From Cyanophora paradoxa CCMP329 (Eukaryota > Plantae > Glaucophyta): a stretch of DNA of 51,641 nucleotides. The DNA is taken from assembly GCA_004431415.1 (NCBI GenBank), contig QPMI01000215.1, forward strand, positions 1 through 51,641. Reading direction: 5' to 3'. Shown in pieces: positions 20,666-51,641 of this stretch; position 1 is the first letter of the stretch; each line of letters begins with the position of its first letter. The position numbers were made by a program, and so were the translations under genes. The notes under the pieces are model-generated. The model ran no database searches. It was not told where the DNA came from and saw nothing but the letters and a program-made list of their open reading frames with translations.

Positions 20666-23600
20666 ATGGCATCTCGCGCCTCGCCGCGGCCGGCGCAGCT
20701 CGCGCGCGCGTCACCGCAGCCGTCGCCCGTCGACCTCCTCATCGGCGAAGACCCTTCGCTGGCGCCGTACCGCGCGGACCTGCAGCATAGGTCACTGCGC
20801 GCGCTCTCCCTTGCAATTGCGCGCGTGTCGGAGATCGCGGATTGCCTCGCGGCGCAGGTCGGACGCTTATTTCCGGCTTCTGGACCGCGTTTCGAAGGAA
20901 CCAGGTGGACTTGAGGCGTTCTCTCGCAGCTACGAGGAGTTCGGCCTTGTCCGCGTCACACGCGGCGGCCGCTCTGGCATCCGTGCGAGCGTTCTGCGCA
21001 CGCGGTCATTCCTCCCAGCTGCAGCAGACTTTGAATTTGCCCGCAGAGTACCGGGAGTGGGCCCCCGGGGCGCGCGGCGTGTTTCTCTTCGGAGAATTCA
21101 ACAACTGGAATAGGACCGCAGTCCCCTGCCAGCGCGGTGCGGGCCTCCCGAACTTAGGCCGCCTCCAGCTTTCCCTGCCGATATACCAAACTTAGTGGGA
21201 ATCGCTGCAGATCCGTACGGCCACTGGACGGCCTGGCTGCCCGACCACCCGGACGGGCGCCCTCAGATCCCGCACGGCACGAAGGTCAAGGTTCGCAGCG
21301 GCACGGCCCACCCGCCCGCCATCGACCAGGCAGCGCCATGGTGCTCAGGTCTCGATTCTGACCGAGATGGGGTACCACGTCGAGCGCATCCCCGCCTGGT
21401 GCGCGTGCCCGCCCGGCCGGGTCCACCTGCCCCTCCCGCTCAAGCGTGGGCGGGCCCGCAGGATCCGGTGCGCGGCCCGAGCGGCGCCCCTCGAAGGGGC
21501 GCGCACGGGGGCGCAGGTACGCTGTCCAGCAGCACGGCGCCGTCGGCTACGACGGGGTCGCCTGGTCCGCCGCCCCCCGCCCCCGCCGCAGCCGCAGCGC
21601 GTCCCCGGGCCCCGCGGGGCTCTGAGGGTCGGGTGGCAGGTGGGAGGCGCCGGCGTTCTTCCACCCGCGGCCGGCGCCGCCGGCGTCGCTGCGGATCTAC
21701 GAGGCGCACGTGGGGATCGCGACGGAGGAGCACCGGGTGGGGACCTTCAGGGAGTTCGCCCGCGACGTCCTCCCCTACGTCAAGCAGGCGCCCCCGGCCC
21801 CCCGCCGCCCGCGCCCCCGCACTCCAACCCCGCCTTCGAACCCCCGAACTCGCCCCTGACGCCCCGTGACGCCCCGGCGCCCGCGCAGCTGGGGTACACC
21901 GCCGTGCAGCTCATGGGCATCCAGGTGCGCGCGGGGCCAGCTCGCCCCACCGAGCACGGGCCGGGAGGCCGCGGTGTCGATCCCCCGCAGGAGCACGCGT
22001 ACTACGGGTCGGCGGGGTACCACGTGACCAACTTCTTCGCCGTCTCCTCGCGCTTCGGTGAGGCGGCGGGGGCGCCGCCCTCGCCGCGCCTGCGCGGGCG
22101 CCTCGAGGTCCGCCTCGAGCACTGCTGGACGCAGGCACGCCGCACGACTTCGCGGCGCTGGTCGACGCCGCGCACGCCCTCGGCCTCCTCGCCCGCCGAC
22201 CCCCCCCCCCCCCCCCCAGCCCGCCCCGCCCGCCCCGCGGCCTCGTGCCGAGGCGGCGCCGGCGCCGGTGCTCGCGCAGGTGCTCGTGGACATCGTGCAG
22301 GCCCACGCCTCCTCCAACGTGCGCCCCCCGGCCCCGCCACCAGCACCGCCGCCTCGCCTCGAATCCCCCGCCCTCCCCGCCAAGGTCAACGACGGGATCA
22401 ACCTGTTCGACGGAACGGACTCCTGGCTCTTCCACTACGGGGCGGCGGGGCGGCACCCCCTGTGGGACAGGTCCCCCCCTCTGCGCCGAGATCTGCCGCG
22501 CCCTAGGCCTGATGGGGGCCCCGGGGCGGGGCGGGGCGGGCAGCCGGATGTTCGACTTCGGGAATTACGAGACTGTGAGATTCCTCCTCTCCAATTTGCG
22601 CTTCTTCCTCGACGTCTACAACGTCGACGGCTTCCGGTGCGCCCCGCGCCGCCCGTGGCCGGCACGGCGCCGGGGTCGAGGCTGGGGGGCGGGAGGTTCG
22701 ACGGGGTGACGGCGATGCTGTACAAGCACCGCGGGGCGCACGTCTCCTTCTCGGGGGCGTACGGCGAGTACTTCGGGCCCCAGACCGACCTCGACGCCTG
22801 CGCCTACCTCGCCCTTGCAAACCACGTCCTTCAACTTCCCGGCCCGCCCTGCTCCCCGCGGGGGGCGAGCGAGGGCGCGGCAGGTGGTGCACGCGGCGCT
22901 GCCCGGGGCGGTGACGATCGCGGAAGACGTCTCGGGGATGCCCGGCCTCGCCCGCCCCGTCGCCGCCGCCGGCCTCGGCTTCGACTACCGCCTCGCCATG
23001 GGCCTCCCCGACCTGCCCGCCCCGCCCCGCCCCGCCCTTCCGGCCTCCCGCACCGCGCGAGCGAGGGCCGCGCAGGTGGTTCCGGAACATGCGGGTGCGG
23101 GACGAGGATTGGTACATGGACGGCATCCTCGCGCACCTCTTCGGCCGCCGCCGCCTCGAGAAGACCGTCGCCTACGCCGAGAGCCACGACCAGGCGCCCC
23201 CGCCCCGCCCCGCCCCGCCTCCGCCCGGCCCCTCGCCCGGCGCGCACCGGCACCGGCCCCGCTCACTGCCGCCGGCGGCGCGCAGGCGATGGTGGGCGAC
23301 AAGACCCTCGCCCAGCACCTCTTCGACCGGCGCGCGCCTCGCGTCCCTGTCCTCCCTCCCGCGCAGGCGAGGCGGCCCGGGCGCTGACGGGGCGGGGGCC
23401 AGGGAGATCTACACGCACATGTCGTGCTCGAGCCCGCGCACGGTCACCGTGGACCGCGCCCTCGCCTTGCACAAGATGATCCGGCCCGCCCCGCCCCGCC
23501 CCGCCCCGAGCCCGAGCCCGAGCTCGCCGCCGCGCTGGTGCAAGCGACGGGCGGGCCCCGGGGCGGGGCGCGCGCAGGCTCATCACCTTCGGCTTCGGGG

Positions 23601-28636: not shown

Positions 28637-31582
28637 CTACGAGAGGGGCTCGGTGTTGGCGAGGAGCCACTCGAGGGGCCGGCCCTGCGCGCGCGGCGGT
28701 GGGGCGTCAGGGCGCGAGCGGGCGGGGCGGGGGGCGGTGGCGGGCGGACGGAGAGGCGCGGGGCGATCTTCGCGCGGATCTCGGCGTGGTAGTCGTCGAT
28801 CCACCTCCGCTCCGGCGCGGAGAGCATGCCGACGTCGATCAGCTTCCGCTCCAGGGGGACCTGCCGCCGTACCCGCCCTCGTCCGTGGACGGCCCACGAA
28901 GCCCAGCGGGGCGGGCGGACGAGGGTGATGTGCTCGAAGCCGAGGTAGTCCTTGTCGGCGAAGCGGTGCGGCAGGTCGAGCTTGCGCGTCACGAGCACGT
29001 TCTCGATGCGGATACCGAAGCCCTGTTCCGGCCGCTCCCCCGGCTCGTAGTAGCCGGGCTCTGGGGGGCGGCGTCGGCAGCGGCAGAGGGGAGGGGAACC
29101 GGTGCAGGGCGGCGGGGGCGGGCACCGTCGGTGACGGTCATGGAGGCCTGCAGGCCGGTGTCGAGGGCGGAGGGCCGGAAGCTGACGAGCTGGGGGCCTG
29201 CGGCGGCTCGGGCTCAGCGCGGCGGTGGCGAGGCGGGGCGGCGGGGGGCGGGCCCTCGTGGACGCAGAGGTAGGCGCCGACGCCGTGGCCGGTGCCGTGG
29301 CGGTAGTCCAGCCCGACGCGCCAGAGCGGGCACCGCGCCAGGATGTCCAGCACGTGGCCCGTCGTCCCCGCCGGGAAGACCGCCGCGTCCAGCGCGATGT
29401 GGCCCTGCAGCGCCGCCCCAGCTCGCGCTCGCACCGCGCGGCAGCGCGAGGCGGGGCGGGCAAGAGCCGACCTGCAGCACCCGCGTGTAGCACTCGCGCT
29501 GGTGCGGAGTCGGCTCCCCGTAGTGGAGCGTCCTGCGGGCCGTCGGCGCGCGGCGCACGGGCGGCGGCGAGGGGCGGACCTGGTCACGTCGGTGGTGCCG
29601 TCGGCGTACTGGCCGCCGGAGTCGCACAGGTACATGCAGCCCGGCCGCAGGAGCGCGCAGGAGCCGTGCTTCGGCTGCGGGCGGGGTCAGCGGGGAGAGG
29701 GCGGGGGGCCGGGGCGGGCGGGGGCGCCTTGTAGTGTATGATGGCGGCGTTGCCGTCGACGGCGCTGATCGTCTCGAAGGAGAGGCCCACGAAGTGCTCC
29801 TGCTCCCGCCTGCCGCCCGGCCCCGCCCGCCCCGTCAGCCCCGCCCGCCTCCCGCCGGGCCAAGGCGGCGCGGGGGCACCGGAACTGCTCGAGGACGTCG
29901 GCGGCGGAGCACTCGTCGAGGGGCTCGGGGCGGGGGGGCCCGAAGGAGGGGCGCCCCTCGGGCGTCGCCAGGCAGTCGTGGAGCCAGGCGAAGAAGGCGC
30001 AGAGGGCGGCGGCGTCGCGCGCGTGCGCCGCCCGCAGGCCCGCCAGCTCCGCCTCGTTCTTGCACGCCTTGAGCAGCGCCAGCGGCGACTGCTTCTCCAC
30101 TGTCCCCCGCCGCGCCGCCTTCAGCGCCGCCTGCACCGCCAGGTTGCACTTGCTTCCGTCTGCCCCGCCATCGTTGGGCCCCGCCGAGCGTGCACGCCGC
30201 CGGCGGCGCGGCGCGGCCTTTCGCGGCGGGGCGCACCGACCCACCAGACGCCGGCGCTCTCGCCCTTCCTCCGCTTCTTCGGCGCGCCGTCCTCCGCCTG
30301 CGCGGGGCGTGAGGCGAGGAGGCGCGTGGGAGGGGACGGGGCGCGGGCTGCGGGGGCGGGCGGGCAGGCCTGGGTGGCGGGCTGGGCGGGGGGTGAGGGG
30401 AGGGCCTCGAGCTCGGCGAAGAAGGCGTCGTAGGGGCGGACCTCCACGCCGCTCTCCCGCAGGTGCCCCGCCACCTCCTCCCCCGCCACCTGCCCCGCCC
30501 GCCCCGCCCCGTCCGCCCCCGAGCGCCCCGCCGACCGGCGCGCGTGCCTTCCGGGGGTCGATGTAGAGGCGGGCCCAGGAGGCCGTGACGGCCGCGTAGG
30601 CCCACACGACCGGCGTGCAGAAGCTGCCGGCGGCTCGGGGGAGGCCGCGAGGGGGCGGGGGACGGGGCGGCGGGGGCGTACACGTCGGCGCCGCGGATGT
30701 TGAAGAGCCAGGCGACCTCGTCGAGGGCCGTCACGACGATGCCCTCGCACCCGGACTTGGCCACCTTCTCCCGCAGCTTCCCCAGCTGCCCCGGCGGGGT
30801 CAGCGCGGGCGGCGGCGGGCGTGCGCGCCCCGCGCCTTGCTCGCGACGCTCTCGCCGGCGAAGCGGAGCGGGTGGAGGAAGGCGGCCTCGCGCGGGGCCG
30901 GCGGCTGCGCGGCGCCCCAGACGGCGTCCACCAGGTTCTGCCGCACCGGCACGAGCTCCATGTTCCGCTTCTCGATCTTCTTCCGCCACCGCTCCGCCGT
31001 CGCTGCCGCCCGCTCGCCCCGCCCGGCGCCGCTGCACCCGCGCCGCGCCGCGCACCGATTGAGACGAAGCGAGGGTCGACCGCCACGCGCGCCCCCGCCG
31101 GCAGGTTCTGCTTGAGCCATTTCTGCGCGGCGAGAGTGAGCGGACGGGCGCGGCGGGCCGCGCGTGACTGGACCTCCGTCGTCGCGTCGTCTGGAATGCG
31201 CATGAGCTTCCAGTTTTGATCGAGCTCCTTCTTGGCCTGGTCGAAGTACCTTCCGTCCGTCCACAGCAGCGCCTCGGTCTCCGTAATGACCGCGAGGCCT
31301 GCGAAGCGCGACGTGGGCGCCGAGGGGCGAGGGCGCTTGGGCGCGTTCGTACCGGCGCTCCCGGTGAAGTTCGAGATGAACTGGCGTCGCTTGTCGTGAT
31401 CCGACACGTACTCGCTCTGCGCGTCGCATAAGCAGACGACGCGAGGGCAGACATCCCTGCGAGCGGCCGACCTGGTGGGCGTCCTCGGACGGGACGATGT
31501 ACGCGTGAGCGTTGACGTCTGGTGTACGCATGAGCTCCCGCAGCCGCGCCAGGCGCGCCGTCGTATCGGGCGGCCCTTCCAT
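28637..31582 (-). CDS. XPNPEP1: Xaa-Pro aminopeptidase (aminopeptidase P, M24B)
   Basis: AYIVPSEDAHQ|SEY, FISNFTGSA|G, LWTDGRY, LDEVAWLFNIRGAD, SFETIS, YLCDSGGQYADGTTDVTR, DYRHGTGHGVG, HEGP, EPGYY, GIRIEN. Confidence 0.95.
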
Positions 31583-32522
31583 TCGTGTAGGAAAAAAGGG
31601 CGCCGGCGGGCCCGGGGGGTACAGCGGGCTCAGGCAGCCCAGCCCCTCCATGTGCAGCTGCGCAGGCCTGATGATCATGATCATGATCATGATCATGATC
31701 ATGCATATGATCAGAGCCCGGCAGCTGCAGTACTTATAATTTAGCTCTAGATCTAAACTAAACGTTAACGTTAACTTGCCAGTCACTTAGTTGGCAAGCA
31801 CTGCGGCAGCAGGCCTTTCAATGGGGCCTCTGGCATCGCGGCCGGCGGGCTCGGCATGGAACAGAGTGACTAAAACGCATTCTCGGTGCGCTAGGAAGCG
31901 ATTTACATCGTTAGTTCCCCGCGGTCCCGGTACCCCGGGTTTCGGCCGACCCCCGGCCGGGGCTTTTCCGTCGGACCTGGCGCGCCTGAGCCCCGCCCCG
32001 CGGGCCGAGAAGGCACGAATTCGCATCTGCAGTGAAGCCCGAGCTAATAGAGCGCTTCGTCTCTGCCGGAGCTCTGGTCGGGGGGCCCGAGCCCCGGGGG
32101 CGGGGCCCTGCGCCCTGGCGCGGCGCGAGCGCAGAGGCGGCTGCCGGGGATCGTTCCAAGCGTTCTTCTGATGCATTCCGAGCTAATAGAACGCATCGTC
32201 TGCGGGCGTGAACGCCGGCGCCGGGCTCCCTGGCCTCGGGTCGGGAAGGTTTCGAATACGCCCGGGGCCGCTTTCCGCTGTCGCTTGAGCTTGATCATGA
32301 TGCAGTGCGTCCTGCACGCTCAGAGCGAGCTGCGCGGCGTGCTCGCGGCTGCGCCGGCGTCGGGCAGAATATAATTATAATCACGTGCCTGAATTGGACG
32401 GTCGGACCTGCAGCCCAGCGGCTGCAGCTGGCGGTCGAGCAGATAAGCATGTCGTTCGCTTTTGATTAGTGCCCCCGGTGGCCCAGTGGCTTTTGACCCC
32501 CGCGGTCTACTCATATATAACA

Positions 32523-33605
32523 ATGCCCCGCATCAAGGTGGGAAAATGATCATGAAAGCCCGCTGAATTCATATCTGCGATTCTTAGTTCTTTCGAGTTC
32601 GTTCATTGTAATTATATTTTGCAGCAAACTGCCAAGCGTGGCACCGGAAACAAGGCCCCGCGAAAGGCATTCAAGAGCTCCGGCGCCAGCGGCCTCAAGA
32701 CCAAAGCCGCGCGGAAAAAGGCTGTGGGCGAGGGCGGAGTGAGAAAGCCGTTCCGGTCGGCCTGCTCTCTTCCCTACGTTTTATTTTGAAGAGAAAGTCC
32801 CGGCACGTGAGAATCGCTCGCTCGCGCAGCCATCGCCCTGGGACGGTGGCAAAGCGCGAAATTGTGAAGTACGTTCAATGTTTTTTATTTCACTCTTGTT
32901 TAAATCTATTTAGATCTGTGACAAATAAATTCTGAATGAAACCCCGCTCCTGTTCAGGTACCAGAAGACCTACAATGCCCTCATTCCGCTGGCCCCGTTC
33001 GGCCGCCTGGTACGTGTGGGGGCCCTTCAAAACTTGAAACTATCCTCTGCCGCCCGAGCCCTGTGCCCTGCTGTGCGGCGCGTGCACGTGCGCAGGTGCG
33101 CGAGCTCACGGCCGCGATGATCAAGGAAGACGTGGAGGCCGGTCTTCGTGAACAATCTGTTAACTTTCGGTTCACAAAGGTGCGCGCCCGTGCCGCAGTG
33201 CCGGGCGCGGGGGGGTGCGAATAGCTGGCTGATTAGTATTTCATGTCTTGCAGGACACTATCCAAGCCATTCGCGAGGCCGCCGAGGCGCACATCATTCG
33301 CTGGTTCGAGGGTGGTGTCCTCGCGGCCAAGCACCGCAAGCGAGTCACGGTCGGGTGCGCACGCGTAAGGTCTTGCCCTATTTTTGATTACAAATGCTGC
33401 AGTGCCTCTTCCGTCCCTTGATTATAACTATAATTATAAGCATGGCTTAAGCTCCCTCTGCCAGGCTGCTTCTTTAATTATAATGTCACGCTCGGATTGA
33501 TGCTAATCGCGACTGTCCTGATCCTTGAATTTGGACAGCCCTGCAGACACGGATCTTGCGCGACGCTTGAAGGGAGACACGGCGGCCGACACCGAGAGCG
33601 CCTGA
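32523..33605 (+). CDS. Divergent histone H3 variant, 162 aa, 7 exons (CenH3-like fold features, H3-like tail)
   Basis: Exons 32523-32537, 32625-32755, 32830-32868, 32958-33009, 33096-33179, 33254-33354, 33539-33605 (all GT-AG, total 489 nt) give MPRIKQTAKRGTGNKAPRKAFKSSGASGLKTKAARKKAVGEGGVRKPFRHRPGTVAKREIVKYQKTYNALIPLAPFGRLVRELTAAMIKEDVEAGLREQSVNFRFTKDTIQAIREAAEAHIIRWFEGGVLAAKHRKRVTVGPADTDLARRLKGDTAADTESA*. Confidence 0.93.
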
Positions 33606-34040
33606 AGCTTAAAATCGCGATAGAGACTCTGAGACAAATAGCTAGAATGCCGCCACCACGAGTTCTGGTCATGATCACGGTCACTTATTTACCAATTGCA
33701 AGTCAGTGATCATGAGCCGCCCTAGGCCTCGTCACGGCATGGCAGAATCGGGTGCTTAAGCTTGCAATCGATATCGATACTATGATAACACGTGAGCACT
33801 GAGCGCAGAAAGTCACACGGATCATAAAAGCACACTACGTACTGCACAGATCAGAAATCTACAAGTCTAGAGCGCGGGGAACATCGCATCAAATAGTCAA
33901 CTAGGGCCTAGCTATAGGCTTCACTCTAGATCTAGATCTTACTAAAGAGCCAGAAAGAGAGAGGGCCAGATTATTTAGATGATTGAAACGAAAAGGCTAA
34001 ACTCTAAACAGCGTATAACGTGTGCTATTTTCGTTGCCGG

Positions 34041-36374
34041 TCAGTCGCCTTTGGCGCCGGCCTCGCCGGCGCCTTCGGCGGCCCCTTCCTCGCCCGACGC
34101 CTCGCTCTGCTCGTCCCCGTCCCCGTCCCCGTCGCTCTCGCCGGCCTCCCGAAGCTCCAGCACCGAGCCGTCAAAGACAAAGCCCTTGGCGCGCTGCACC
34201 TCTTCCGCGAGCCGCTCCCGGATCTGGTCCGCCCCCTCTTTCGTGCAGCCCTTCAGGAGCGGGAGGCAGCTGACAAAGTCGACGACCGATATGCCGCTCC
34301 CGCAGACGCGCGCCAGGCCAGGGAACCTCGTGAGCGTCTCTCCCAGCGCGCGGAGGTCGTTGTAGATCTCGGACTGCGCGAGCCTCCGGTGAGCGACGTT
34401 GAAAGCACGCCGGGCCGGGCACGCGTGCTTGCAGCTAGCGCTAGGGGGCCCGCCCCCGCCCCCTCCTCCCGCAGGGGAATTCGAAGCGACCTCACCTTTT
34501 GGGCGCTGACCTCGAGGCGAAAGCCGGCCGCCTGGAGGATGTGGTCGTACTTTGCGCAGAGGTGCTCGGCGCGGTAGGCGCCCCAGAGGCGGCGGTTGCG
34601 GCCGTAGCGCTCCGTGTAGGCCTGGTGGACGGCGAGGACGGAGCAGGCGATGAGCATGATGCAGCGGATCCGCTCCCGCCCCGCCTCTTCGATGCGGTTC
34701 AGGAGGGCCGCGCGGGCCTCGGGGCTGGCGTCGATCTGGCGCCCGATGAGCCCCGGGTCGATCCCCGCCTCGAGCCCAAAGTCGTAGGCCTCCAGCGACT
34801 CTGGGTCGAGCCCGCCCTCGCCCTCGCCCCCGCCCCCGGCGGGGCCCTCGGCGAGCTCGTCGGCGTCGTCCGCGCCGCCCTCGGCCCGCTCCGCCTCGGC
34901 GAGGGCCTTGCGCCAGCGCTCCGCGAGCTCCTTGCCCCGCGGGTCCGGCGAGCCGGCGCGCGAGCCGTCCTCCTCGCTGCCCGAGCCGCCGCCGCCGCCC
35001 CCGCCGCCCTCGGGCCCGGCCTCGATGGCGAGGGGGGCCGCCGCCGCCTTGCCCTTGCCCTTGCCCTTGCCGCCGCCGCCGCTGCTGCCGCCGCCGCCGC
35101 CGCCGCTCCCGGCCGAGCTGCCCCCTCCGACTCGGAGCGCGCGTCCTCGTCCTTGGGGCGCGTGTACGCGTTGTAGAGGACGCGGATGAGCTTGTCCGAC
35201 TCCCACTCCTTGCGGCGGTCGCGCCCGGCGCCCCACTTGCTCCGCGCCGCCCGCCGCGCCGGCTTCGAGGGGCCGGCGCCCGAGCCGGACCCGGGGCCGG
35301 CGCCCTGCGCCGAGGCCGACGCCGACGCCGCCTCGGGTCGGGGGAGCTCGCCGGCTTGGGCGGGCGCAGCGTCTTGCGCCGCTCCAGCGCCCGCTCCTCG
35401 GCGCCGTCCTCCCCCTCTTCCTGCTCGGCCGCCGACTCGCCCCGCGCCGGGCCCTTGGTCGACGTCGCGGCGCGCTTGGCGCGCGATCGCGAGGGCCCGG
35501 TGGCCGGCCCCTCCTCCTCCTTCTCCTCCCCCTCCTCCTCGGCGGCCGGGCCCGGGCCCAAGGCGGCGCCCTTTTCCTTGCGCTTCTTGCCGCCCTGGGC
35601 CTTGGCGCCCGCGGCCGGCTCCCCCGGGGCCAGGGGGGCGGCCGCCGGCGCCGGCGGCTGGGCGGCGGGCGCGGATCCGTCGGACGGGGCGGCGGCTCGG
35701 GGGCCAGAGCCGGAGCCCGAGCTCGGGCCCGCCCCGGCGGGGCCGCGGGGGCCGGGGCGGGCCGCCGCCGGCGGCGGCGGCGGGGCGCGGGCCTGGGCGG
35801 CGGCCGCCTGGAAGCGCTCGAGGGCGTACGTGAGCGCCGTGCGGAGGCAGAGGTCGCCGGAGATCCACGAGGCGGCAAAGGCGGCGTCGTCGATGTAGGC
35901 GAGAAAGGAAAAGAGGGCGTCGATGCGGGAGCTGCAGACGAGGCCCGAGGCGGCCGGGTGGGGGTCGCCGCAGCTGGGGCAGGTGAAGAGGGGCGGCGAG
36001 GCGCCGCCCTCGGCGCTGACGGAGAGGAGGGTGAGGGCGCAGCTGAGGCAGACGAACGAGCCGGTCGAGTTGAACTTGAGGTCGTCGAGGGCGGGGCGCG
36101 GGTGGGCGTCCAGGGCCTCGTTGACGGACGATGCGCCGGTCTTGGCGAGGAGGCGGGCGGCGGCGCAGGAGAGGAGGATCGGGGGGAGGATGCGCTCCGA
36201 CTTGCAGCGGGCGCAGGCCGGGCGGCAGGAGAGGAGCGGGTCCCGCCCCAGGCTGATGAACGCGGGGAGGCTGACCTTGGCCGGCCGCGAGTCGAGGGGC
36301 GGGCAGCCGGACGCGCCGCCCGCCGCGCCCCGCGGGCTCGTCACCTGGGCCCCCGACGCCGGCTGCGACGCCAT
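34041..36374 (-). CDS. Intron-poor ORFan: N-terminal Cys-rich (RING/Zn-finger-like) region, low-complexity middle, helical C-terminal domain; two apparent frameshifts
   Basis: CRPACARC..LSC..VCLSC..FTCPSCGDPH; frameshifts near 35340-35380 and 35120 in G/C runs; one intron 34374-34495 joins VSAQK|SEIYNDLRALGETLTRFPGL; TATA-like motif about 85 bp upstream. Confidence 0.6.
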   Translation of the reverse strand: MASQPASGAQVTSPRGAAGGASGCPPLDSRPAKVSLPAFISLGRDPLLSCRPACARCKSERILPPILLSCAAARLLAKTGASSVNEALDAHPRPALDDLKFNSTGSFVCLSCALTLLSVSAEGGASPPLFTCPSCGDPHPAASGLVCSSRIDALFSFLAYIDDAAFAASWISGDLCLRTALTYALERFQAAAAQARAPPPPPAAARPGPRGPAGAGPSSGSGSGPRAAAPSDGSAPAAQPPAPAAAPLAPGEPAAGAKAQGGKKRKEKGAALGPGPAAEEEGEEKEEEGPATGPSRSRAKRAATSTKGPARGESAAEQEEGEDGAEERALERRKTLRPPKPASSPDPRRRRRRPRRRAPAPGPARAPAPRSRRGGRRGASGAPGATAARSGSRTSSSASSTTRTRAPRTRTRAPSRRGQLGRERRRRRRQQRRRRQGQGQGQGGGGPPRHRGRARGRRGRRRRLGQRGGRLARRLAGPAGQGARGALAQGPRRGGAGRGRRGRRRRARRGPRRGRGRGRGRARPRVAGGLRLWARGGDRPGAHRAPDRRQPRGPRGPPEPHRRGGAGADPLHHAHRLLRPRRPPGLHGALRPQPPPLGRLPRRAPLRKVRPHPPGGRLSPRGQRPKGEVASNSPAGGGGGGGPPSASCKHACPARRAFNVAHRRLAQSEIYNDLRALGETLTRFPGLARVCGSGISVVDFVSCLPLLKGCTKEGADQIRERLAEEVQRAKGFVFDGSVLELREAGESDGDGDGDEQSEASGEEGAAEGAGEAGAKGD

Positions 36375-36660: not shown

Positions 36661-38473
36661 TTTTGACCCGCCCGGTCGATTCCGGCTACGGCGCCTGTAC
36701 CCCTGGGCGGGGCCGCGAGCTCTCGGTGAGACGAGGCGAGCGGCGGGGGACGGGGGAGAAGCGGGGGTACGGACGGACCGGGCCCGCCGCTTATGGCCCG
36801 CCTGGTCGATTCCGGCTACGGCGCCTGTACCCCTGGGCGGGCTCGCGAGCTCTCGGTGAGACGAGGCGAGCGGCCAGAGGGTGCAGGGTACGGACGGACC
36901 GGGCCCCGCCAGTTATGGCCCGCCTGGTCGATTCCGGCTACGGCGCCTGTACCCCTGGGCAGGCCCGCAAGCACGCCGGTGAGACGAGGCGAGCGGCGGG
37001 GGGTGGGGGCGAGCGGGGGTACGGACGGACCGGGCCCCGCCGGTTATGGCCCGCCTGGTCGATTCCGGCTACGGCGCCTGTACCCCTGGACGGGCCCACG
37101 AGCCCTCGGTGAGACGAGGCGAGCGGCCAGAGGGTGCAGGGGAGCGGGGGTACGGACGGACCGGGCCCGCCGCTTAACGCCCGCCTGGTCGATTCCGGCT
37201 ACGGCGCCTGTACCCCTGGGCGGACCGCGGGCTCTCGATGAGACGAGGCGAGCGGCCAGAGGGTGCAGGGGAAGCGGGGGTACGGACGGACCGGGCCCCG
37301 CCGCTTATCGCCCGCCTGGTCGATTCCGGCTACGGCGCCTGTACCCCTGGGCGGGTGCGAGGCTCTTGGTGAGACGCGGCGAGCGGCAAGAGGGTGCGGG
37401 GGAAGCGGGGGGTACGGACGGACCAGGCCCGTCGCTTATCGCCCGCCTGGTCGATTCCGGCTACGGCGCCTGTACCCCTGGGCGGGCCCGCGAGCCCTCG
37501 GTGAGACGCGGCGAGCGGCGGGGGGCGGGGAGAGCGGGGGGTACGGACGGACCAGGCCCGCCGCTTATGGCCCGCCTGGTCGATTCCGGCTACGGCGCCT
37601 GTACCCCTGGGCGGGCTCGCGAGCTCTCGGTGAGACGAGGCGAGCGGCCAGAGGGTGCAGGGTACGGACGGACCGGGCCCCGCCGGTTATGGCCCGCCTG
37701 GTCGATTCCGGCTACGGCGCCTGTACCCCTGGGCGGGCCCGCAAGCACGCCGGTGAGACGAGGCGAGCGGCGGGGGGTGGGGGCGAGCGGGGGTACGGAC
37801 GGACCGGGCCCCGCCGGTTATGGCCCGCCTGGTCGATTCCGGCTACGGCGCCTGTACCCCTGGACGGGCCCACGAGCCCTCGGTGAGACGAGGCGAGCGG
37901 CCAGAGGGTGCAGGGGAGCGGGGGTACGGACGGACCGGGCCCGCCGCTTATCGCCCGCCTGGTCGATTCCGGCTACGGCGCCTGTACCCCTGGGTGGGCC
38001 CGCGAGCACGTCGGTGGGACGAGGCGAGCGGCGGGGGGCGGGGCGAGCAGAGGGCACGGACGGACCGGGTCCGCCGATTATGGCCCGCCTGGTCGATTCC
38101 GGCTACGGCGCCTGTACCCCTGGGCGGACGCGCGAGCTCTCGGTGAGACGCGGCGAGCGGCCAGAGGGTGCGGGGGAAGCGGGGGGTACGGACGGACCAG
38201 GCCCCCGCCGCCTATGGCCCACCTGGTCGATTCCGGCTACGGCGCCTGTACCCCTGGGCGGACGCGCGAGCTCTCGGTGAGACGCGGCGAGCGGCCAGAG
38301 GGTGCGGGGGAAGCGAGGGGTACGGACGGACCAGCCCCCCGCCGCCTATGGCCCACCTGGTCGATTCCGGCTACGGCGCCTGTACCCCTGGGCGGGCCCG
38401 CGAGCCCTCGGTGAGACGCGGCGAGCGGCGGGGGGCGGGGAGAGCGGGGGGTACGGACGGACCAGGCCCGCCG
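36661..38473 (+). repeat. Tandem array A: 14 units of about 122-134 bp
   Basis: Core CCTGGTCGATTCCGGCTACGGCGCCTGTACCCCTGG recurs near 36675, 36805, 36927, 37058, 37188, 37319, 37450, 37579, 37701, 37832, 37962, 38092, 38226 and 38360, with G-rich related linkers. Confidence 0.95.
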
Positions 38474-40019
38474 TGCTCGGGCGCACCCCCACACGAGGCC
38501 CCGGGCGCTCTTGGCTCGCCCGGCGGGCCGGCTGCGGAGGGCTTGGCGTTGGCGGGGAAGCGGATCCAGAGGGGACGCTCGAAGCGGGGCCCTCTCTCGC
38601 CCGCCACGGGCGCGGCGCCCGGCCGGGCCGCGCTCAACCTCGCGATGGACGCCCCGCCGCCGCTTGCGCCGCCGCCGCCGCAGGGCATCGGCCGGCTCCC
38701 CGTGCCGACCGACGTCCCCGCGCCCGGCCTCGCCAGGCCGCTGCCGCGCGTCCCGCCCCCGAGCAGGCGGCCCGAAGCGCACCAGGCGATCCGCTCTGGC
38801 GACGGGGCGCCGCGGCCCGGCGCCGAGGCCTGGGCCGGTTGAGCGCCGGCCGGCTCCGGCGGGGCGGGCCCGGCCGGGGCGCGCGGGCGCGCGTAGGCAT
38901 GAGCCGCTTTGGATTCGAACTGAACGCAGGAAGAGCTCGCGGGCGCGCAAAAACTTAATCCGGCGTCGGCGCCCTGCGGGCCGGGGCGAGGGACATGTAC
39001 AGAGGCATGCGCACGTCAGCCGCGGCGGATCGAAAGTTGCCTGCGGGCCGCGGCCGCCGAGCAGGCTACGACCGACGGGAGGCGCATGAACCGCACGGGT
39101 AGCTGGAACCGCCGGAGGCGTGGCTCTAGATCTCTCGGGAGAGCAGAAGGGAGGCTCGCGGCTCGGGCGCGTCCGAGCGCCCGCACGAGCGCGGCTCGGG
39201 TCCGCTGCTCTCTGTGCGTGGGATCGCTGTGGCTCTAGCGTGCTTTTCCGCCCGGCGGTGGAAATGCGTGTACCCAGAGACTCGCCGCAGCCGTGCGGCT
39301 GGAGCCTGGAGGCTCGAGCACGCGCACCGCGTGCCGCCAGCTGCCGCCGCAGCTCGGCGAGCGCGTGCACGCACGCTGGCCCAAAGCGCAGCTCTTTCGG
39401 GGGGGGGGGGGCCAGTTTGCAACGTTTCGATCGTGCGACATCGCACCATCGAATTTCAACAGCACGCCGCGTCGCGCGAGTGCCCTCTGGCGCAGTCCTT
39501 GGCTCCTGTTGAGCTCGAAAATCGCGTCGGCGCCCGCCCGGCTCGTGCTCGGGTCGGGCGCAGTCACTGAGTCGAAGATCCCATGGCCATGGCTAGCGAT
39601 CGATCCGCAGCGCCCCTCCGATGCCTCTCCGGCCCACAAGCTCACGTATGCGTGCCCTATTCGCACATGCTGGGCACCCGAGCTCGGCGCGCACGGCGCC
39701 GCGCTCGGGCGGTAGCGCAGACGCAGCCGGAGCCCAAGCGCACTTTCCGCGCTTTTCCGCCTGCGCGCCTCCGGCCGTCGATATCGATCGGTCCCGCGGC
39801 CGCCGCGTGCGGCGCCGGCGCGCAGCGTGCGGACCCGCGCGCTTCTCCGCCACACCCTCGCGAAGCGCTACGCGGGGAGGAGTGCGGGCGCACCGGGTCC
39901 GGCGAGCAAGACGATCACCGAGTCGGCCGGCACCGCGCTCGGTCCGCTTCTTCGGGCTGCAGCGAGCCCCGCCCCCTTTTCCTCGGCCCGCTGCCCCGCT
40001 CCGCGCGGCCCCTCGCGCG

Positions 40020-41213
40020 CCCCCCGCCCTCGTTGCTCCTTCGGCGGCCCGCACGGCCCGCGGCAGCTGGCCCGCAGTAGGGGCCCGGCCTGGTCGATTC
40101 CGGCTACGGTGTGTGTACCCCTTAGGCCTCTCGGCCCCTTTGAGCGCCCCGCCCCTCGCTTATTCGGCGGCCCGCACGGCCCGCGGCAGCTGGCTCGCAG
40201 TAGAGGCGGCCTGGTCGATTCCGCCTACGGTGTGTGTACCCCTTAGGCCTCTCGCCCCCTTCGAGCGCCCCCCGCCCTCGCTCACTCGGCGGCCCGTACG
40301 GCCCGCCGCAGCTGGCTCGCAGTAGGGGCGGCCTGGTCGATTCCGCCTACGGTGTGTGTACCCCTTAGGCCCCCTCGCCCCCCCTCGAGCGCCCCCGCCC
40401 TCGCTCACTCGGCGGCCCGTACGGCCCGCGGCAGCAGGCTCGCAGTAGGGGCGGCCTGGTCGATTCCGGCTACGGTGTGTGTACCCCTTAGGCCTCTCGC
40501 CCCCTTCGAGCGCCCCCCGCCCTCGCTCACTCGGCGGCCCGTACGGCCCGCCGCAGCTGGCTCGCAGTAGGGGCGGCCTGGTCGATTCCGGCTACGGTGT
40601 GTGTACCCCTTAGGCCCCCTCGCCCCCCCTTGTGCGCCTCCGCCCTTGCTCACTCGACGACCCGTACGGCCCGCGGCAGCAGGCTCGCAGTAGGGGCGGC
40701 CTGGTCGATTCCGGCTACGGTGTGTGTACCCCTTAGGCCTCTCGCCCCCTTCGAGCGCCCCCCGCCCTCGCTCACTCGGCGGCCCGCACGGCCCGCCGCA
40801 GCTGGCTCGCAGCAGGGGCGGCCTGGTCGATTCCGGCTACGGTGTGTGTACCCCTTAGGCCCCTCGCCCCCCCTTGTGCGCCTCCGCCCTCGCTCGCTCG
40901 ACGACCCGTACGGCCCGCGGCAGCAGGCTCGCAGTAGGGGCGGCCTGGTCGATTCCGGCTACGGTGTGTGTACCCCTTAGGCCTCTCGCCCCCTTCGAGC
41001 GCCCCCGCCCTCGCTCACTCGGCGGCCCGCACGGCCCGCCGCAGCTGGCTCGCAGTAGGGGCGGCCTGGTCGATTCCGGCTACGGTGCGTGTACCCTCCA
41101 ACGCGCCCCCCCCGCCCCCCCGCCCTCGCTCACTCGGCGGCCCGTACGGATCGCAGCAGCTGGCTCGCAGTAGGGGCGGCCTGGTCGATTCCGGCTACGG
41201 TGCGTGTACCCCT
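40020..41213 (+). repeat. Tandem array B: 10 units of about 122 bp, same core as A, different C-rich linker
   Basis: Core CCTGGTCGATTCCG[G/C]CTACGGTGTGTGTACCCC near 40093, 40214, 40336, 40459, 40581, 40704, 40826, 40948, 41069 and 41184. Confidence 0.95.
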
Positions 41214-41254
41214 GCTAACGCTGTCGTTTGCCTTTCCTCTCGACCCACCCCTTC

Positions 41255-41749
41255 GCGCGCTTCCGCACCCTCCGACCGCTCGCCCCCGTCTCTCAAAGAG
41301 CTCGCGCACCCGCCCAGGGGTACAGGCGCCGTAGCCGGAATCGACCAGGCGGGCCATAAGCGGCGGGCCTGGTCCGTCCGTACCCCCGCTCCCCCCGCAC
41401 CCTCTGGCCGCTCGCCTCGCCTCACCGACGTGCTCGCGGGCCCGCCCAGGGGTACAGGCGCCGTAGCCGGAATCGACCAGGCGGGCCATAAGCGGCGGGG
41501 CTCGGTTTGTCCGTACCCCCCCGCTTCCCCCGAACCCTCTGGCCGCTCGCCGCGTCTCACCGAGAGCTCGCGCGTCCGCCCAGGGGTACAGGCGCCGTAG
41601 CCGGAATCGACCAGGCGGGCGATAAGCGGCGGGGCTCGGTTCGTCCGTACCCCCGCTCTCCCCGCCCCCCGCCGCCCGCCTCGTCCCACCAGAGAGCTCG
41701 TGGGCCCGTCGGGGGTACAGGCGCCGTAGCCGGAATCGACCAGGCGGGC
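41255..41749 (-). repeat. Tandem array C: 4 units, inverted copy of array A
   Basis: GGGGTACAGGCGCCGTAGCCGGAATCGACCAGGCGGG (reverse complement of the A core) four times at about 133-bp spacing, with reverse-complement A linkers. Confidence 0.93.
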
Positions 41750-41899: not shown

Positions 41900-44530
41900 C
41901 CTTTCTACCTGTCCAAGCACGTGCACGGGCTTTGGCATGGGCGGGCCCCCGATAGAGGGCGAGCCCGTCCGACCCCGTCGGGCGGCCTCAGTCGGCCTCC
42001 TCGTCCTCGATTGCGCTCGCGTGGGAGACGCCGGGCTCGCCCCGCCGCCGCCGCTTGCTCCGCCCCGCTCCGCCGTCGTTGCCGCCGCCGCCCCCCGTCC
42101 TGCCGGTTGGGCCCTCGGGTCGGGAGCGCGCGCGCGCGCGCGCGCGCGCACGCGAGGGAAACGGGGAAAGAGGGCGCGCACGTCGCGTCGCGGGGCGCCC
42201 TCGCAGCCGCCAGCTCGTCGCCGCTTCTGCGCGCCCCGCCCCGGCCTTTCCGTCGGCGCGCGGCCGCGCCGTGGGCGCGCGGCCTGCCGCACCGGAGGGC
42301 GACGAGGTGCGCGTCGGACATCTCGAGCCACCGCTGCGCCCCGGGCTGCCTGCCGCTGCTCGGGGCGGGGCGTCGGGGCTCGGAGGGGGGCAAGGGCGAG
42401 AGCGGGGACGGGCGCACGGGTCCGGGGCGGGCCAGCCGAGGCGGCGGGCGGCGAGGACGACGAGGGCGACGACGGCGTCGCGGTCCATCTCGAGGACCTC
42501 GTCCGCCGGCGCCTCGGCCGGCAGGTGCCGCAGCGCAAACTGCCGGATGTCCTCCGTCCCGCGCCGGAAGAAGCTCCTGGAGGCGTACGTCTGCGCCCTG
42601 CGCGCGCCGGCGGGGTCGGTCGGGCGGCGGCGGCCGGCGGCGGCGGTGGTGGGGGGAGCGCCCCCAGGGCCCCCGCTGCGCACGCGTGCTGGGATCGACG
42701 ACGCCGCCCGCCTCGATCCGCCTCGCGGCCCTGCGGCGGCAGGGGGACGTCTCGGGGCGGCCCAGCGGGTCGTGAGGGGATGCGAGGCCGCGAGCTCACT
42801 CGGCAGCCGCAAGGAATCGCTCCGGCAGAGGATCGCTGCCGCGCGCGGGCGTCGGGGTCGGTCGGGGCCGGGCGGGCGAACGAGGCGGGAGCGGCGGCGG
42901 CCGGCGCACCAGTGGGAGACGTCGAGGCCGCGCTCGGCGCAGAGGCGCGCGGCGAGGGCGCGGAGGGGAGGAGGTCCCGAAGCTCGGCCGCCTGCTCCCC
43001 GGCGCCCAGCGAGGCGAGGAGCTTGAGCAGCCTCCCCGGTCCCGAAAGGCGTCCCGCCGGACGGGCCGCGGGCCGGCGGCCCGGCCGCGGGCCCGTCTGG
43101 GGAGCGCGGCGGCGGCGAGGCCGGGGCGTCGGGGGCCCGAAGAGGCGGCGCACGGCGGCAGGCTCGATCGGCTCGGCGGTGCGCACGAGCCGGCCGGTCG
43201 GGGCACCGCTGGGCGGGGCCGCCTCGTCAAAGACGTGCGCCGGCGCCCCGTCTCCCCCGTCCCCGCCGCAGGCCGGGCACGGGGCGCCCGGGACGGCGAG
43301 CGCGAGCGCCGCGAGGCCGCCACCAGCCGGCTCCCGCGCGGCCGTCCCGCGAGCTTGCGGCGCACCGCCGGCTCGCGCAGCAGGCGCGCGGCTGCGCGCG
43401 GCGCGCGGGCGTCGGCTGGGGCGGTCGACCGGGCCGGGAGCGGCGGGGCGCACCCAGGTCGATGTGCCGGCAGAGGACGGCGGCGCAGGCCGCGCGCTGC
43501 TCGCCGGAGAGCTCCGCCACGCCCTCCTGCGGCTTGGTCGGCTTGGGGGGCGACTCGGCGACGGGCCGGCGTGCGGGCCGCACCGGCAGGAGCGCGGGGC
43601 CCACGGCGGAGACCGCGCGGGCGTGCGCCGCGCGGACGGCGTCGGCGGTGGCCTCGCCGGCGTCCTCGAGCCCCAGCAGGATCACCGGGCTGCCGATATC
43701 GAGCCCCAGGCTCTCCAGCCGTCCGGCTCCATCCCGGCCGGCTCCCAGACTCTGGCAGAGTCCCATCGACCAGAGTCCACATTGACTCCACAACGGCGTA
43801 CCGGTAGTAGGTCCGGTACCCAGCCTGGCAGCGCGAGCGCAGCGTAGGCCTGCGGCTTGCCGTCAAGCGCTTGAGCCAAAGCTCAAGCCGGGCTGGGCGG
43901 TCAAGCGCTTGACTGGCTTTTGGCCGGCTCAAGCCGGCTCAAGCCCTGGCCGAGGGGGCCAGGGAGGGGGTATCGGCGCGCGGGGGGTACTTCGACGCAG
44001 CTGCAGCGAATTCGAAGCCGGCGCGGCGCGCGCGCGCGCGCCTGCGAGCGCTAGCGATGGCATCGCGACCGTTGGACCGAATGTCGATCTAGAGGTCTGA
44101 AGAGCGTGCAGGTATGATCGATATCGAGGCGCGGCGCGCGCGCGCGCGCACGTGCACGGCCTGCGCCGTCGCGAGCTCTGAGCTTGCCGAGTCGATATAT
44201 TAGCAGCTCATGATCATGATCAGTGTTTAGATGTGTTTCTTTAGAATTCAAAGCACAATAAGCGCTAGCTCTAGCATTTCGCTGCGGCGCTGAGGCTTGC
44301 GGAAGTGTACCCCCCTTCGGCTTGCCTCAAGCCGGGCCAAGCGCTTGACCCGGCCAAGTGGCCAAGCGCTTGTCCGGGCCGGTCGGCCGGCTTGGCTTGG
44401 CTTGGCAGCGAGCGCCCGGGCTTGGCTTGACTTGAGCCGACTTTCTGGCGTCAAGCCGCACCCCTAGCGCAGCGAGAAACTTGAAAACTCTATCGACAGT
44501 GATTCGGCACCGGTACTGTCCGACGGTCAT
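41900..44530 (-). pseudogene. Disrupted gene of unknown function (CPAC motif), interrupted by the hAT MITE
   Basis: Removing 43845-44466 plus one TSD gives FKFLAALALPGWVPDLLP|(gt-ag)|SLGAGRDG..LDIGSPVILLGLED..LCRHIDL|..CPACGG..RLLKLLASLG..; downstream frameshifts; both ends uncertain. Confidence 0.45.
43845..44466. mobile_element. Non-autonomous hAT-type DNA transposon (MITE), 622 bp
   Basis: Perfect 8-bp TSD GCGCAGCG at 43837-43844 and 44467-44474; imperfect TIRs TAGGCCTGCGGCTTGCCG and (reverse complement) TAGGGGTGCGGCTTGACG; clustered subterminal CAAGC/GCTTG motifs at both ends; no transposase ORF. Confidence 0.9.
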
Positions 44531-47039
44531 GTCATTAAGTTAGGCGTCGCTTTTCATAGACGTTTGCCCACCCGTTGTGATATAGACGTTCACAAAGATA
44601 GAAGAATGACCGTCGGACGGGAATTAGCTTGAATTTACCTAAGAAATTACGCAAAAGCTAGGGACATATAGACGAGGTTTTAGTTAGACGAGTACCCAGT
44701 GCTACCCACCCTCGTCTATCCGCGCCTATCATTGTGTATACGCCTAACTTTGTGGATTGACAGTATTATTAATTATCTGGCGCATTAATTAAGTGCATTA
44801 ATTAAGTGCATTAAAATATTACGGTACTAGTCCGTCGACGTCGACGTCCCGACTTCCGAGTCCGGGGACCGGGGACCCGGGAATCGGCGGGATCCGACGG
44901 TCGAATCCGGCCCATGCCATTATCCGGGTCGATCATTGCCGCGAGTCCCGCGACTCATGATCATGATCATGCGCGCATGCGCACTACACAGACCTACAGT
45001 ATACTGGTACTGCGGCCGCGGCATGCCGTCATTGCCATATATATAATTATATAATTATATAATGCAATGCCAAGCATGCATACATGCAACTTCAACCTTG
45101 CATAATTAATTAATTACGTATACGTAGACTACTTCAGTACTAGGTAACGTAGTACGTACGTATACGCGTACGCGTATACGTACCGTAGTACCGTAACGAC
45201 GCTACCACGGTATACTACAGTACCGTACGTACTACGTAGCCGCGCGCTCAGATCTAGACTCTCCGGATCCGAGTCCGAGCTCGAGCCTCGAGCTCTGAGA
45301 CAACTGCATGCTACTAGGCTAGACATTGCTAGTCATGCAGCCATGATGCAGGCCTTGGCCTAGGCTGCAGGCTGCAGCTGCAGCTATCAAGCTTAAGCCA
45401 CTTTGAACGATCTTTCTCCAGTCCGACGGTCCGACGAGGTCGACGGGCTTACTAAGTTGAGCTTCCCGTGACTCCGATCCGGCCGCGGGCTCTCGGCAGT
45501 TGCATATACCTTGGGCGGCGAAGTTGGGCCGGCCGCGCGCGCCTCGTCAGACCGTGCCGGCATTCGGCCTCAGCGGCTGCAGCCGCCCGCGGAGTAGGCT
45601 TCGAAGAGCATCTCGACATTGAGTGCAATCGTTGAACGTGAGCGGCTGCCTCTCACCTCTAGATCTGTGTCTCGCTCCTGGCCGTCCGGCCCACTGGGCA
45701 GCTTATATAATTAGGTCGACGGTCTGCGGCCGACCCATATATCATGATCATACATGACCACCGAGCTCGAGTACTAGTCAGGCTCGAGCCGACATATGCA
45801 TTTCATAAGCCTCCGGCTGCGCGCGCGCCTGCGCGGGCCGCCCCGGCCGATTGCGATCCGCGTGAGTGTACTATATATAGATTGGATGCCATCAGACGAT
45901 ACATATATATATATATATCCGCCGACGCCGCCACGCAATCGCAGGCCTGAGGCTAGGCCCGGGCCGCCCATGGCCAGCCCGGGGCGCCGGCGTCAATATG
46001 GACAAGTACATATATAGGGACGCGTACGCAGAGATGTGACCATCGCCGCTATAGCTAGTACTGTCAGACCACATGGTCCACACCTGTCGGACTTGGCCGA
46101 CTCGCGATCGATTGCTACGTATATACGTATATACTAAGCTAGTTATCGCTTGCAAGTGTAATATATGTAGCTCTCGCCGCGGCGCATACCATGATAGATC
46201 CACTAGAATACATAATATATATATATATCATTGTATAGCTACTATAGCTAGCTATAGGCGCCGGCTAGCCTAGTAGGGCGCTGGCATGCATGTCGGCCTT
46301 AAATAATCTTAGTATGCAGGACGAACAGCCTGTACATGTGTCACACAGTGTATCGATATCGCTCTGACGCCGGCACCGGCGCTGCGCACGACAGTGATCA
46401 CCGCGGCACGCGTACGAGCTCCTGATCACGCGCGCGCGCGCAACGCAGGTCGACGTCGACGTACGCGTCGGGTATCTACGTACTGGCGGCTAGGTGCTGG
46501 CTATGGCGATGTTTGTTCCGTGCCGCGGTCGGCGCCGGCTACGTATACCCATGACCGTGGCCTCGTCCGAGGCGTGGCTGATCGCGACCCGCTCGGAGCG
46601 TATCGCATCTTTCTTCCGTGGGAGCGGCGGCGTCAGGCTGTGCTGCCCAGGAACGGGGATCGAGACCTGGCTCCGGAGAAGCAAAAGGCCAGTCGGTTCG
46701 CCCAGCAGGCAGCCTGTAAACGGTACGAGCATGGCGAGCTCCGCCCGAACCCCCGGCCCATCAAGAATTCCATGTATGCCCAACGTTATATTAACGCTGA
46801 GTACGTATACGCCTTGTGCTCTCAGGCTGGGGGTTCTCAAGGGGTCCAAGATGCGGTGGAATAAGAACGAACGTCATTCCACCTTCGACCCCATCTGGCC
46901 CCCAGGCAGCCATGGCCAGCTCGACCGCCACTCTGGGCTGCTCCCTCTGAGCTCGATCACGAATGCGATGAGGCCCTTGCAGCGGACATTGAGCGCCTTT
47001 ACCAGATTGCGCGGAACGATTTCAACGTATCTCGCATGT

Positions 47040-50000: not shown

Positions 50001-50940
50001 AATTCCGGGAGCACATCGACTTCACTTTTCGCGCCTCAGTAATTTCTTGTAATAAGCGAATTTCAACCGGCGCCCCTCGAGCTCGAGATGCCCTTGCAAA
50101 CTGGCAAGACTCTTGGTGAATGTGTGTAGCTTGTGCTAATCTCGGTCTCCGCAAGCGGGCATTCAAATGAAATACGTTTATACTTAGTAATCATCGGCAT
50201 CTCGCAGGTGACAGTGCAAGGCATCTGCCCGACCCTTTCTACGGACCCAGGCTTTTTCTTTTTCGAATGATGCACTGCTCGATGCTCTTGGCGGCCAGCC
50301 CCGGCGGGCGGCTTTCTCCAGATGGAAGGCACGTTTTGCGGCCGGCGGAAACGGCTCACCTCTTGTCGGTTATTTGTATGCATGGTGACGTGAAGGTTCG
50401 TCTCTGGTCGCACGTTTAGTCAACGAATATCTTGTTCACTCCGACGTGTAGCTTTTAGATCTCCAAGACGTCTCCCTTTTTTCCGGCTCAATCATCGTGC
50501 TCTAACACATGCGGACAGCGTCTCATCGACGAAGAGGTGGCACTACCGCTGGACACGCTCAAGTTTCTCATCCCGAGAAGCGAGAATCGAATTCTCCTGT
50601 CAGCATATCAAACGCCGAAGCGGTTGCTTACCATGGCGGCAGAAGCTCTTCTGGCAAGGCTCCAGTTCGATGTTGAGTTCGAGGAGCTGAAAGGGTTCAA
50701 ATCCCCTTGTGCTTCTCACGGCGATGAATTCGAGAATTTCGGTGAAGAAGTCAAGGGCTGCACATATGCATGCGCACCGTGCCTCCTCTCTCTAATCGCA
50801 CTACTATTGTCTTCGGGTGCCACCGTTTACGCCAACGATTACGAGCTCCTCACCCATCCCCTCGTCACGCAATTCGTTGCCTCTGTCGCACACTTGTCAA
50901 TTGTCGGCCCCATCCTTCCTCCGGTACCGGTGCCCTAGCC
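47040..50940 (+). pseudogene. Degenerate ankyrin-repeat-like gene fragments in a lower-GC segment
   Basis: Fragments SSAL/AAAFEGNEAAVNELL, NALAAAAAGGWPRLVARLIE, LVEMGAC, HGCDINV, LALRNGFPVD, MLLQHG, LLLSSGATVYAND resemble the ankyrin consensus; split by stops and frameshifts. Confidence 0.35.
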
Positions 50941-51641
50941 TTCCTATCCCACGCGCGCCATCGATTGCGAGCTCCAGTTTTCTGACCTTTGAGTTCTATT
51001 CCTCTGTCCGGCTTTCTGCAGCCGCAGATGTCAACCTCAGAGGCGCCCATGTACACGTGTTGTTCCCATTCAGGCTGGCTGTGCAATCCCGAAACCTGTG
51101 TTCTGGCTGATTGTTACCACGGCGCGGGCCAATCCCGTGGTCTGCTGGAGGCGATGATTTGTGCCAACAAGGACGAGACATTTAAGACACTCTTTGACAA
51201 ACATCTCGGTATGCCTCAGCTCGCACATCGCTTACCTCACCCTAGACCCACGGGCTCTCTAGATCTTCGGCTATGCCACGTGCACGTGGTTATAGATTTA
51301 GAAGTGTTTATATATTTAATTATGGTTCAGCTCCCGCAATTCGCAATCCGCCCCCCATCGTTCCCCGAAATTCAAGTTTCATTATTCAATATATATACTG
51401 TTTCGGTATGATCATGATTTACTCCAAGATCGCTATTTGATATTTCGCACATCACGTGCAGGTGCTGGTGGAGCTGTCGAGGTTTGTCGTGAGAATCGGT
51501 CTCCGATGACGCGCGAGCTAGACATCGAAACTCTCGCTCTCCTCCCCCTCCGCACGTGGAATCCCGACGATGCGGCCCTGCGGGACATAGCCTCGGCACG
51601 CCTTCGAAAGAGAGTGCTTTCCTCGATCGATCCGAAGAAGA

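Follow-up and report, generated by a model that had tools for sequence, protein, structure and literature searches.

A divergent histone H3 gene and its surroundings

The window, i.e., the whole stretch of 51,641 nt that was analysed, carries on its plus strand (32523-33605) a gene for a divergent histone H3 variant. When its seven exons are joined they give 489 nt, which correspond to 162 amino acids and a TGA stop codon. The six introns, of 87, 74, 89, 86, 74 and 184 nt, all have GT..AG borders, and the mean intron length of Cyanophora paradoxa is 86 bp (PMC6704402). The gene, its two neighbours and the nearby arrays are the following:

28640..31582, minus strand: divergent neighbour tig00000923_g5475, Xaa-Pro aminopeptidase (single EukProt match, EP00741 Cyanophora paradoxa)
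32523..32537, plus strand: exon 1, start codon and H3 positions 1-4 with A1P and T3I (from the sequence; junction without RNA-contig coverage)
32625..32755, plus strand: exon 2, H3-like tail with R8K/K9R, S10G, an 8-aa insertion, S28K and K36R (PDB H3 matches; 3′ junction in X15 and X16)
32830..32868, plus strand: exon 3, alpha-N helix (tblastn with canonical H3; both junctions in RNA contigs)
32958..33009, plus strand: exon 4, alpha-N/alpha-1 linker and alpha-1 with R63P, L65A and Q68G (comparison with canonical H3; both junctions in RNA contigs)
33096..33179, plus strand: exon 5, last part of alpha-1 and loop 1, the latter longer by 12 aa; R83/F84 retained (alignment; both junctions in X15)
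33254..33354, plus strand: exon 6, alpha-2 and loop 2 with T107G and C110A, H113 kept (Pfam, PDB; both junctions in X15)
33539..33605, plus strand: exon 7, alpha-3, a 6-aa C-terminal extension of small and acidic residues, and TGA (comparison with H3; junction in X15)
33606..34040, plus strand: 3′ untranslated stretch, common to or running into the convergent gene (one X15 contig, from exon 4 to past 34100)
34041..36374, minus strand: convergent neighbour tig00000923_g5476, an ORFan with a candidate RING-like cysteine cluster (EukProt model)
36667..41749, no strand: three tandem arrays (131-bp, 122-bp and inverted 132-bp units) with one common core in 28 copies (from the sequence)

The original prediction of an intact 162-aa H3 protein spread over seven exons and missing from the list of open reading frames is borne out by the open frame and the GT..AG introns, and no ORF of at least 100 aa covers the gene. 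Exon 1 is the sole nearby ATG with a donor that yields both an intron of normal size and an H3-like N-terminus; none of the alternative first exons gives a normal intron. Of the donors and acceptors tried for intron 6, the pair 33354/33539 alone restores alpha-3; RNA shows this junction as well.

Homology searches were run with single exons as queries, and exon-wise matches in Pfam, PDB and Atlas indicate that an H3-type tail, alpha-N and the histone fold are all present. The best 60 PDB matches of exon 2 are all H3 (top E = 0.001), while exon 6 matches the Pfam Histone family (E = 6e-5), PDB H3 (E = 0.0009) and PDB Cnp1 (E = 0.004). The homologue search with exon 5 gave no match and exons 4, 5 and 7 had no significant PDB match, these being short queries and thus weak blanks. 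With exon 6, the homologue search returned only tandem-repeated histone-like proteins, four of which were examined and proved to be concatenated canonical H3s; scans for loci in metagenomes and viral contigs returned nothing, which is weak evidence for so short an exon.

Relative to canonical H3 (P0006:1-136), all of the predicted differences are found: the substitutions A1P, T3I, R8K, K9R, S10G, S28K, K36R, Q68G, T107G and C110A, the additions of 8 aa in the tail, 12 aa in loop 1 and 6 aa at the C-terminus, and the retained lysines. The canonical residues that are kept include K4, K14, K18, K23, K27, K37, K56, F84 and H113. Further changes beyond those first listed are the loss of K79, R63P/K64L/L65A, T32E, Y41H, Y99H and K122A, and the alpha-2 chaperone site (87-90) is rewritten. 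Identity amounts to 25/38 positions (66%) in the tail, 51/98 (about 52-53%) in the core and 76/136 overall, and the net charge equals that of canonical H3. The tetramer and DNA-contact residues H113, D123, L126, A127, R83, R116, T118, R42 and R49 are kept and R63 is lost. The C-terminal extension is made up of small and acidic residues, with no large hydrophobic one.

The EukProt models g5475 and g5476 flank the gene and carry consecutive numbers with none between them, so it was apparently missed by the 2019 annotation. Two further models, tig00020509_g9741 and tig00021535_g22229, are near-identical to g5476 (99% and 94% within the region searched), and their differences from it are mainly apparent frameshift errors. 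Since two models of this type possibly lie near contig ends, the extra ones may be redundant contig ends and not a duplication. The arrays (36667-38473, 40009-41213 and 41263-41749) lie 3-8 kb from the H3 gene. Outside the core, the 131/132-bp and 122-bp units are unrelated; 24 core copies are on the plus and four on the minus strand, and the outer arrays are mutually inverted, like foldback ends, around a 2.8-kb interior. A link of g5476 and the arrays to the H3 gene is putative, and both are only suggestive of an element. No terminal repeats, element ends, transposase or viral hallmark genes were found near the H3 gene, and within the 51,641 nt neither replication genes nor element ends were found, nor any CpG depletion that would point to a methylated element. 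In viral contigs the array core gave three single matches, about chance level.

Transcripts and constraint on the fold

Twenty runs, all of one species, contain the stretch of the H3 gene wholly or partly. Transcript contigs were obtained from runs X15 and X16, of two studies; the contigs are unstranded and the RNA status of the runs is predicted. They skip introns 2-6 exactly at GT..AG, whereas the DNA run X14 has no exon-exon joint. Thus, of the six junctions that had been proposed as a check on the gene, five are exact, and intron 1 lacks coverage. The H3 variant gene is live and spliced, and its protein is predicted. The reading of the locus as a pseudogene or artefact is ruled out by the spliced contigs together with the fold-conservation test described below. 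One X16 contig of low depth keeps intron 4, and four other RNA runs contain next to none of the words of the gene, so that expression looks low or conditional.

Over 435 exon nt, X15 does not differ from the window, as against five differences over 495 nt downstream (p = 0.064, suggestive only). In 33606-34040 a 6-nt deletion at 33693 and 4-5 substitutions relative to the window are common to three RNA runs. A single transcript contig covers the 3′ ends of both the H3 variant and the convergent g5476, which suggests overlapping 3′ UTRs. In X14, 33186-33295 is present in two versions of about equal depth, which differ in a stretch of intron 5 and by a two-base change of Gln to Arg in exon 6; the second version (50:50) may be an allele, i.e., heterozygosity, or a second copy.

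As a yardstick of conservation, 66 H3 proteins from viral contigs were used. Of the 21 fold positions that are most conserved, 17 are unchanged in the variant, compared with 27 of the remaining 62 (p = 0.005 by Fisher's test, p = 7e-6 by a rank test). Because the conserved positions are preferentially kept, including H113, D123, L126, A127, R83, R116 and T118, the product is likely to be a folded, H4-binding histone, and by extension it presumably forms nucleosomes. In two trees with viral H3s it is an unplaced long branch of 1.2-1.8 changes per column. The closest fold identity among the 66 viral proteins is 57-60%, as against 53% to canonical H3, the tree position is unsupported and there is no supported clade; neither the exon 6 scan nor this set yielded a close relative on viral contigs.

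Modification sites and centromere marks

The modification sites absent from the variant are K9, K36, K79, T3, S10 and S28. Both the sequence and the spliced contigs speak for the claim that it cannot be canonically methylated at K9 or K36 or phosphorylated at S10/S28. The sites had also been called rewired: the loss of K9, S10, S28 and K36 stands, but a targeted pattern does not, since changes affect 7 of 19 modification sites and 6 of the 18 remaining positions of the tail (Fisher p = 1.0). Targeted loss is equally unsupported when only the serine and threonine sites of the tail are taken, 4/7 of which are changed (p = 0.21).

K27 is kept, and the residue next to it is now lysine (S28K). Methylation of K27 silences transposons in several algae, and a simple anti-silencing story is therefore weakened. 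In Cyanophora paradoxa CpG methylation is found in repeats and methylated genes are mostly silent (PMC12344493). Algal DNMT3s have neither the ADD nor the PWWP domain (PMC12344493), which rules out an escape from read-out through these domains; because both readers are missing, any effect of the variant on DNA methylation would be indirect. An anti-silencing role of the variant is plausible but putative.

CenH3 proteins are recognized by an extended loop 1, by a tail that diverges strongly and by the loss of the signature residues Gln, Phe and Thr, the T107 site being numbered 118 in that report (PMC4359364). In the variant, loop 1 is 12 aa longer and Q68 and T107 are both replaced by glycine; T118 of the numbering used here is kept. 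F84 is retained in multiple alignments, and the tail is alignable to H3. CENP-C binds hydrophobic C-terminal residues of CenH3, and the extension of the variant has none of this type. The changes R63P, L65A, A75T, Y99H and I130L presumably resemble the CenH3 folds of green plants; each of them also occurs singly among the 66 viral H3s (in 5, 6, 6, 2 and 6 proteins, respectively).

Virus-borne H3s bear on how such marks should be read. Of the 37 viral-contig H3s in which 60% or more of the tail is canonical, 4 have a changed Q68, 3 a changed F84 and 10 a changed T107; at tail positions the numbers are 7 for K9, 25 for S28, 4 for K36 and none for K4. L035 (IMG/VR) combines Q68S/F84W/T107A with an 86% canonical tail and adjoins an NCLDV major capsid gene, L034 (IMG/VR) has a loop 1 longer by 19 aa, and L059 (IMG/VR) has K9R together with K36R. 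More widely, the giant-virus proteins L035, L043, L034, L059 and L024 (IMG/VR) have near-canonical tails with CenH3-like fold marks or tail changes, and Lys-to-Met at K23/K27 also occurs among them. In the best 30 metagenome H3 matches, which are biased to canonical proteins, K9, K36, Q68 and F84 are kept in 30/30. Since changes at Q68, F84, T107 and loop 1 recur on H3-like tails of virus-borne H3s, these marks discriminate poorly, and judged from the sequences loop 1, Q68 and T107 are not diagnostic for CenH3. The original prediction had named a long loop 1 and the loss of Q68/T107 as hallmarks of CenH3; they are indeed present, but their discriminating power is poor.

Weighing the explanations

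Altered modification sites are already known from divergent H3s of protists and viruses. Giant-virus single H3s (Talbert 2022, PMC9145170; L034, L035, L043 and L059) share with the variant an H3-like tail, substitutions at K9/S10/S28/K36, changes at Q68/T107 and, in L034, a long loop 1, and they are thought to enter host nucleosomes (PMC9145170). Unlike them, the variant is encoded by a nuclear gene that is spliced from seven exons and has no viral hallmark gene near it, and its fold identity to H3 is 52%, whereas typical single viral H3s have mostly 73-89% (PMC9145170) and its best viral relative reaches 57-60%. Protists have multiple H3 paralogues with differing motifs at modifiable residues (PMC2939574, PMC3380720); Stylonychia H3.1-H3.10, trypanosome H3.V and Euplotes H3.P are non-centromeric, as the variant probably is, and differ around these residues, the long loop 1 being extra in the variant. 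In the literature searched, no description of histone variants or of a centromere histone in glaucophytes was found, no case of a divergent glaucophyte H3 variant and no account of H3 variants or CenH3 in Cyanophora. The gene thus adds for glaucophytes an expressed and apparently unannotated and undescribed H3 variant.

The explanation that we favour, and regard as reasonably probable, is that of an expressed non-centromeric paralogue from a putative lineage-specific expansion, whose nucleosomes would be unable to take K9/K36 (and K79) methylation or T3/S10/S28 phosphorylation. The variant would belong to a group of divergent H3s specific to this lineage, of which many apparently lie on virus-like or transposable elements. 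It would pair with host H4, H2A and H2B and replace H3 in a minority of nucleosomes; given its rewritten alpha-2 chaperone site, deposition would probably follow a non-standard route. Such nucleosomes could still be acetylated and probably methylated at K27, and they would lack K9, K36 and K79 methylation and the three mitotic phospho-marks (T3, S10, S28), with the result that K9-type heterochromatin and K36 signalling would be locally diluted. The repeats of this genome are CpG-methylated and silent; that the variant in this way helps repeats or elements to remain active is possible but doubtful. The open 162-aa frame, six normal introns, five junctions in transcripts, the preferential retention of conserved fold positions, the H3-homologous tail, the kept F84, the C-terminal extension devoid of large hydrophobic residues and the recurrence of CenH3-type marks in virus-borne H3s speak for the favoured explanation, as does the ORFan neighbour g5476 with its three near-identical models and the repeat arrays beyond it. 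Against it stand the housekeeping upstream neighbour g5475 and six introns, which are host-gene-like, the lack of element ends, transposase or viral hallmark gene nearby, the possibility that the g5476 copies are redundant contig ends, a fold divergence (52%) far beyond that of typical viral H3s (73-89%), modification-site changes that are not enriched, and the kept K27.

One may ask if the gene simply encodes the CenH3 of Cyanophora paradoxa, with an unusually H3-like tail, that marks centromeres and recruits the kinetochore. A longer loop 1 (here by 12 aa), loss of Q68 and T107 (Q68G, T107G), a fold identity of about 50% (52% in the variant core, a divergence within the range usual for CenH3), an altered chaperone site and introns are all shared with CenH3/CENP-A; K79 is lost as well, the gene is intron-rich and weakly expressed beside a housekeeping neighbour, the five fold changes named above presumably recall those of green-plant CenH3s, and no other CenH3 of this species is established in the literature searched. 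Yet CenH3 tails are highly divergent (PMC4359364), whereas that of the variant is 66% identical and aligns with H3 over its whole length; F84 is kept, the C-terminal extension is acidic and offers CENP-C no hydrophobic residues, and viral H3s show these marks as well, each of the plant-like changes being found singly among them. CenH3 is moreover a functional class, and trees fail to separate cenH3 cleanly from divergent H3s (PMC3380720). A centromere histone is thus unlikely, and a non-centromeric H3 copy is the likelier of the two. The original prediction had offered either an unusual CenH3 or a new variant; a live divergent variant it is, but membership of a putative expanded H3 family, the likeliest frame, had been missed.

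A less probable reading is a paralogue, young or relaxed, with transcription but little function, as a passenger of a duplicated segment, or a non-nucleosomal decoy for chaperones or modifying enzymes. The very long branch (1.2-1.8 changes per column), tail changes that are random with respect to modification sites, low contig depth with next to no words in four other RNA runs, and the failure of exon-wise searches to find a homologue outside Cyanophora paradoxa would fit it, but the conserved-position test points to a fold under constraint, the frame and six introns are intact, and X15 differs from the window in 0/435 exon nt and 5/495 nt of the 3′ stretch (p = 0.064, suggestive only). We hold it to be quite improbable. 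Very improbable is a segregation histone of a selfish element, deposited on the adjoining arrays and giving the element or an extrachromosomal form a private centromere-like domain. The CenH3-like fold marks would suit such a role, as would the three arrays at a distance of 3-8 kb, in which a single core is present 28 times; no element ends or replication genes lie in the window, tandem repeats are common here, the C-terminus is not of the CENP-C-binding type, the array core has only three single viral-contig matches at about chance level, and binding to the arrays is purely putative.

A bolder extension of the favoured paralogue reading is that mobile elements of Cyanophora gave rise to a whole family of spliced H3 variants to which this gene belongs. 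These variants would be deposited on the elements' own DNA and arrays, and the resulting chromatin, insensitive to methylation at K9/K36 and to mitotic phosphorylation, would act as a counter-silencing or private-centromere system; all this we consider rather unlikely. No histone-based system of this kind in eukaryotic transposons is described in the literature searched. Should the variant enter repeat nucleosomes, it would provide a natural test of whether a histone that is devoid of K9 and K36 and keeps K27 shields DNA from silencing; should it instead be a CenH3, then its tail would be close to canonical for such a protein. Sequence rules commonly used to call CenH3 (loop 1, Q68, T107) can misfire, given that giant viruses have these marks on H3-like tails.

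Several minor features lie elsewhere in the window. Before the start of the H3 gene, the two copies of a 24-bp direct repeat (92%; 32039-32062 and 32178-32201) lie on either side of an ARAGORN tRNA-Ala call at 32080-32169, which is unconfirmed by Rfam and probably spurious. From 43900 to 51641 the GC content drops from about 78% to 49-57% and the ORFs match neither Pfam nor PHROG; this part may be an inserted element. At 43.9-46.5 kb 6-bp palindromes reach 97 per kb, as against about 30 elsewhere. At 21300-23500 on the plus strand, an intron-rich gene with putative motifs like those of starch/glycogen branching enzymes was recognized by eye.
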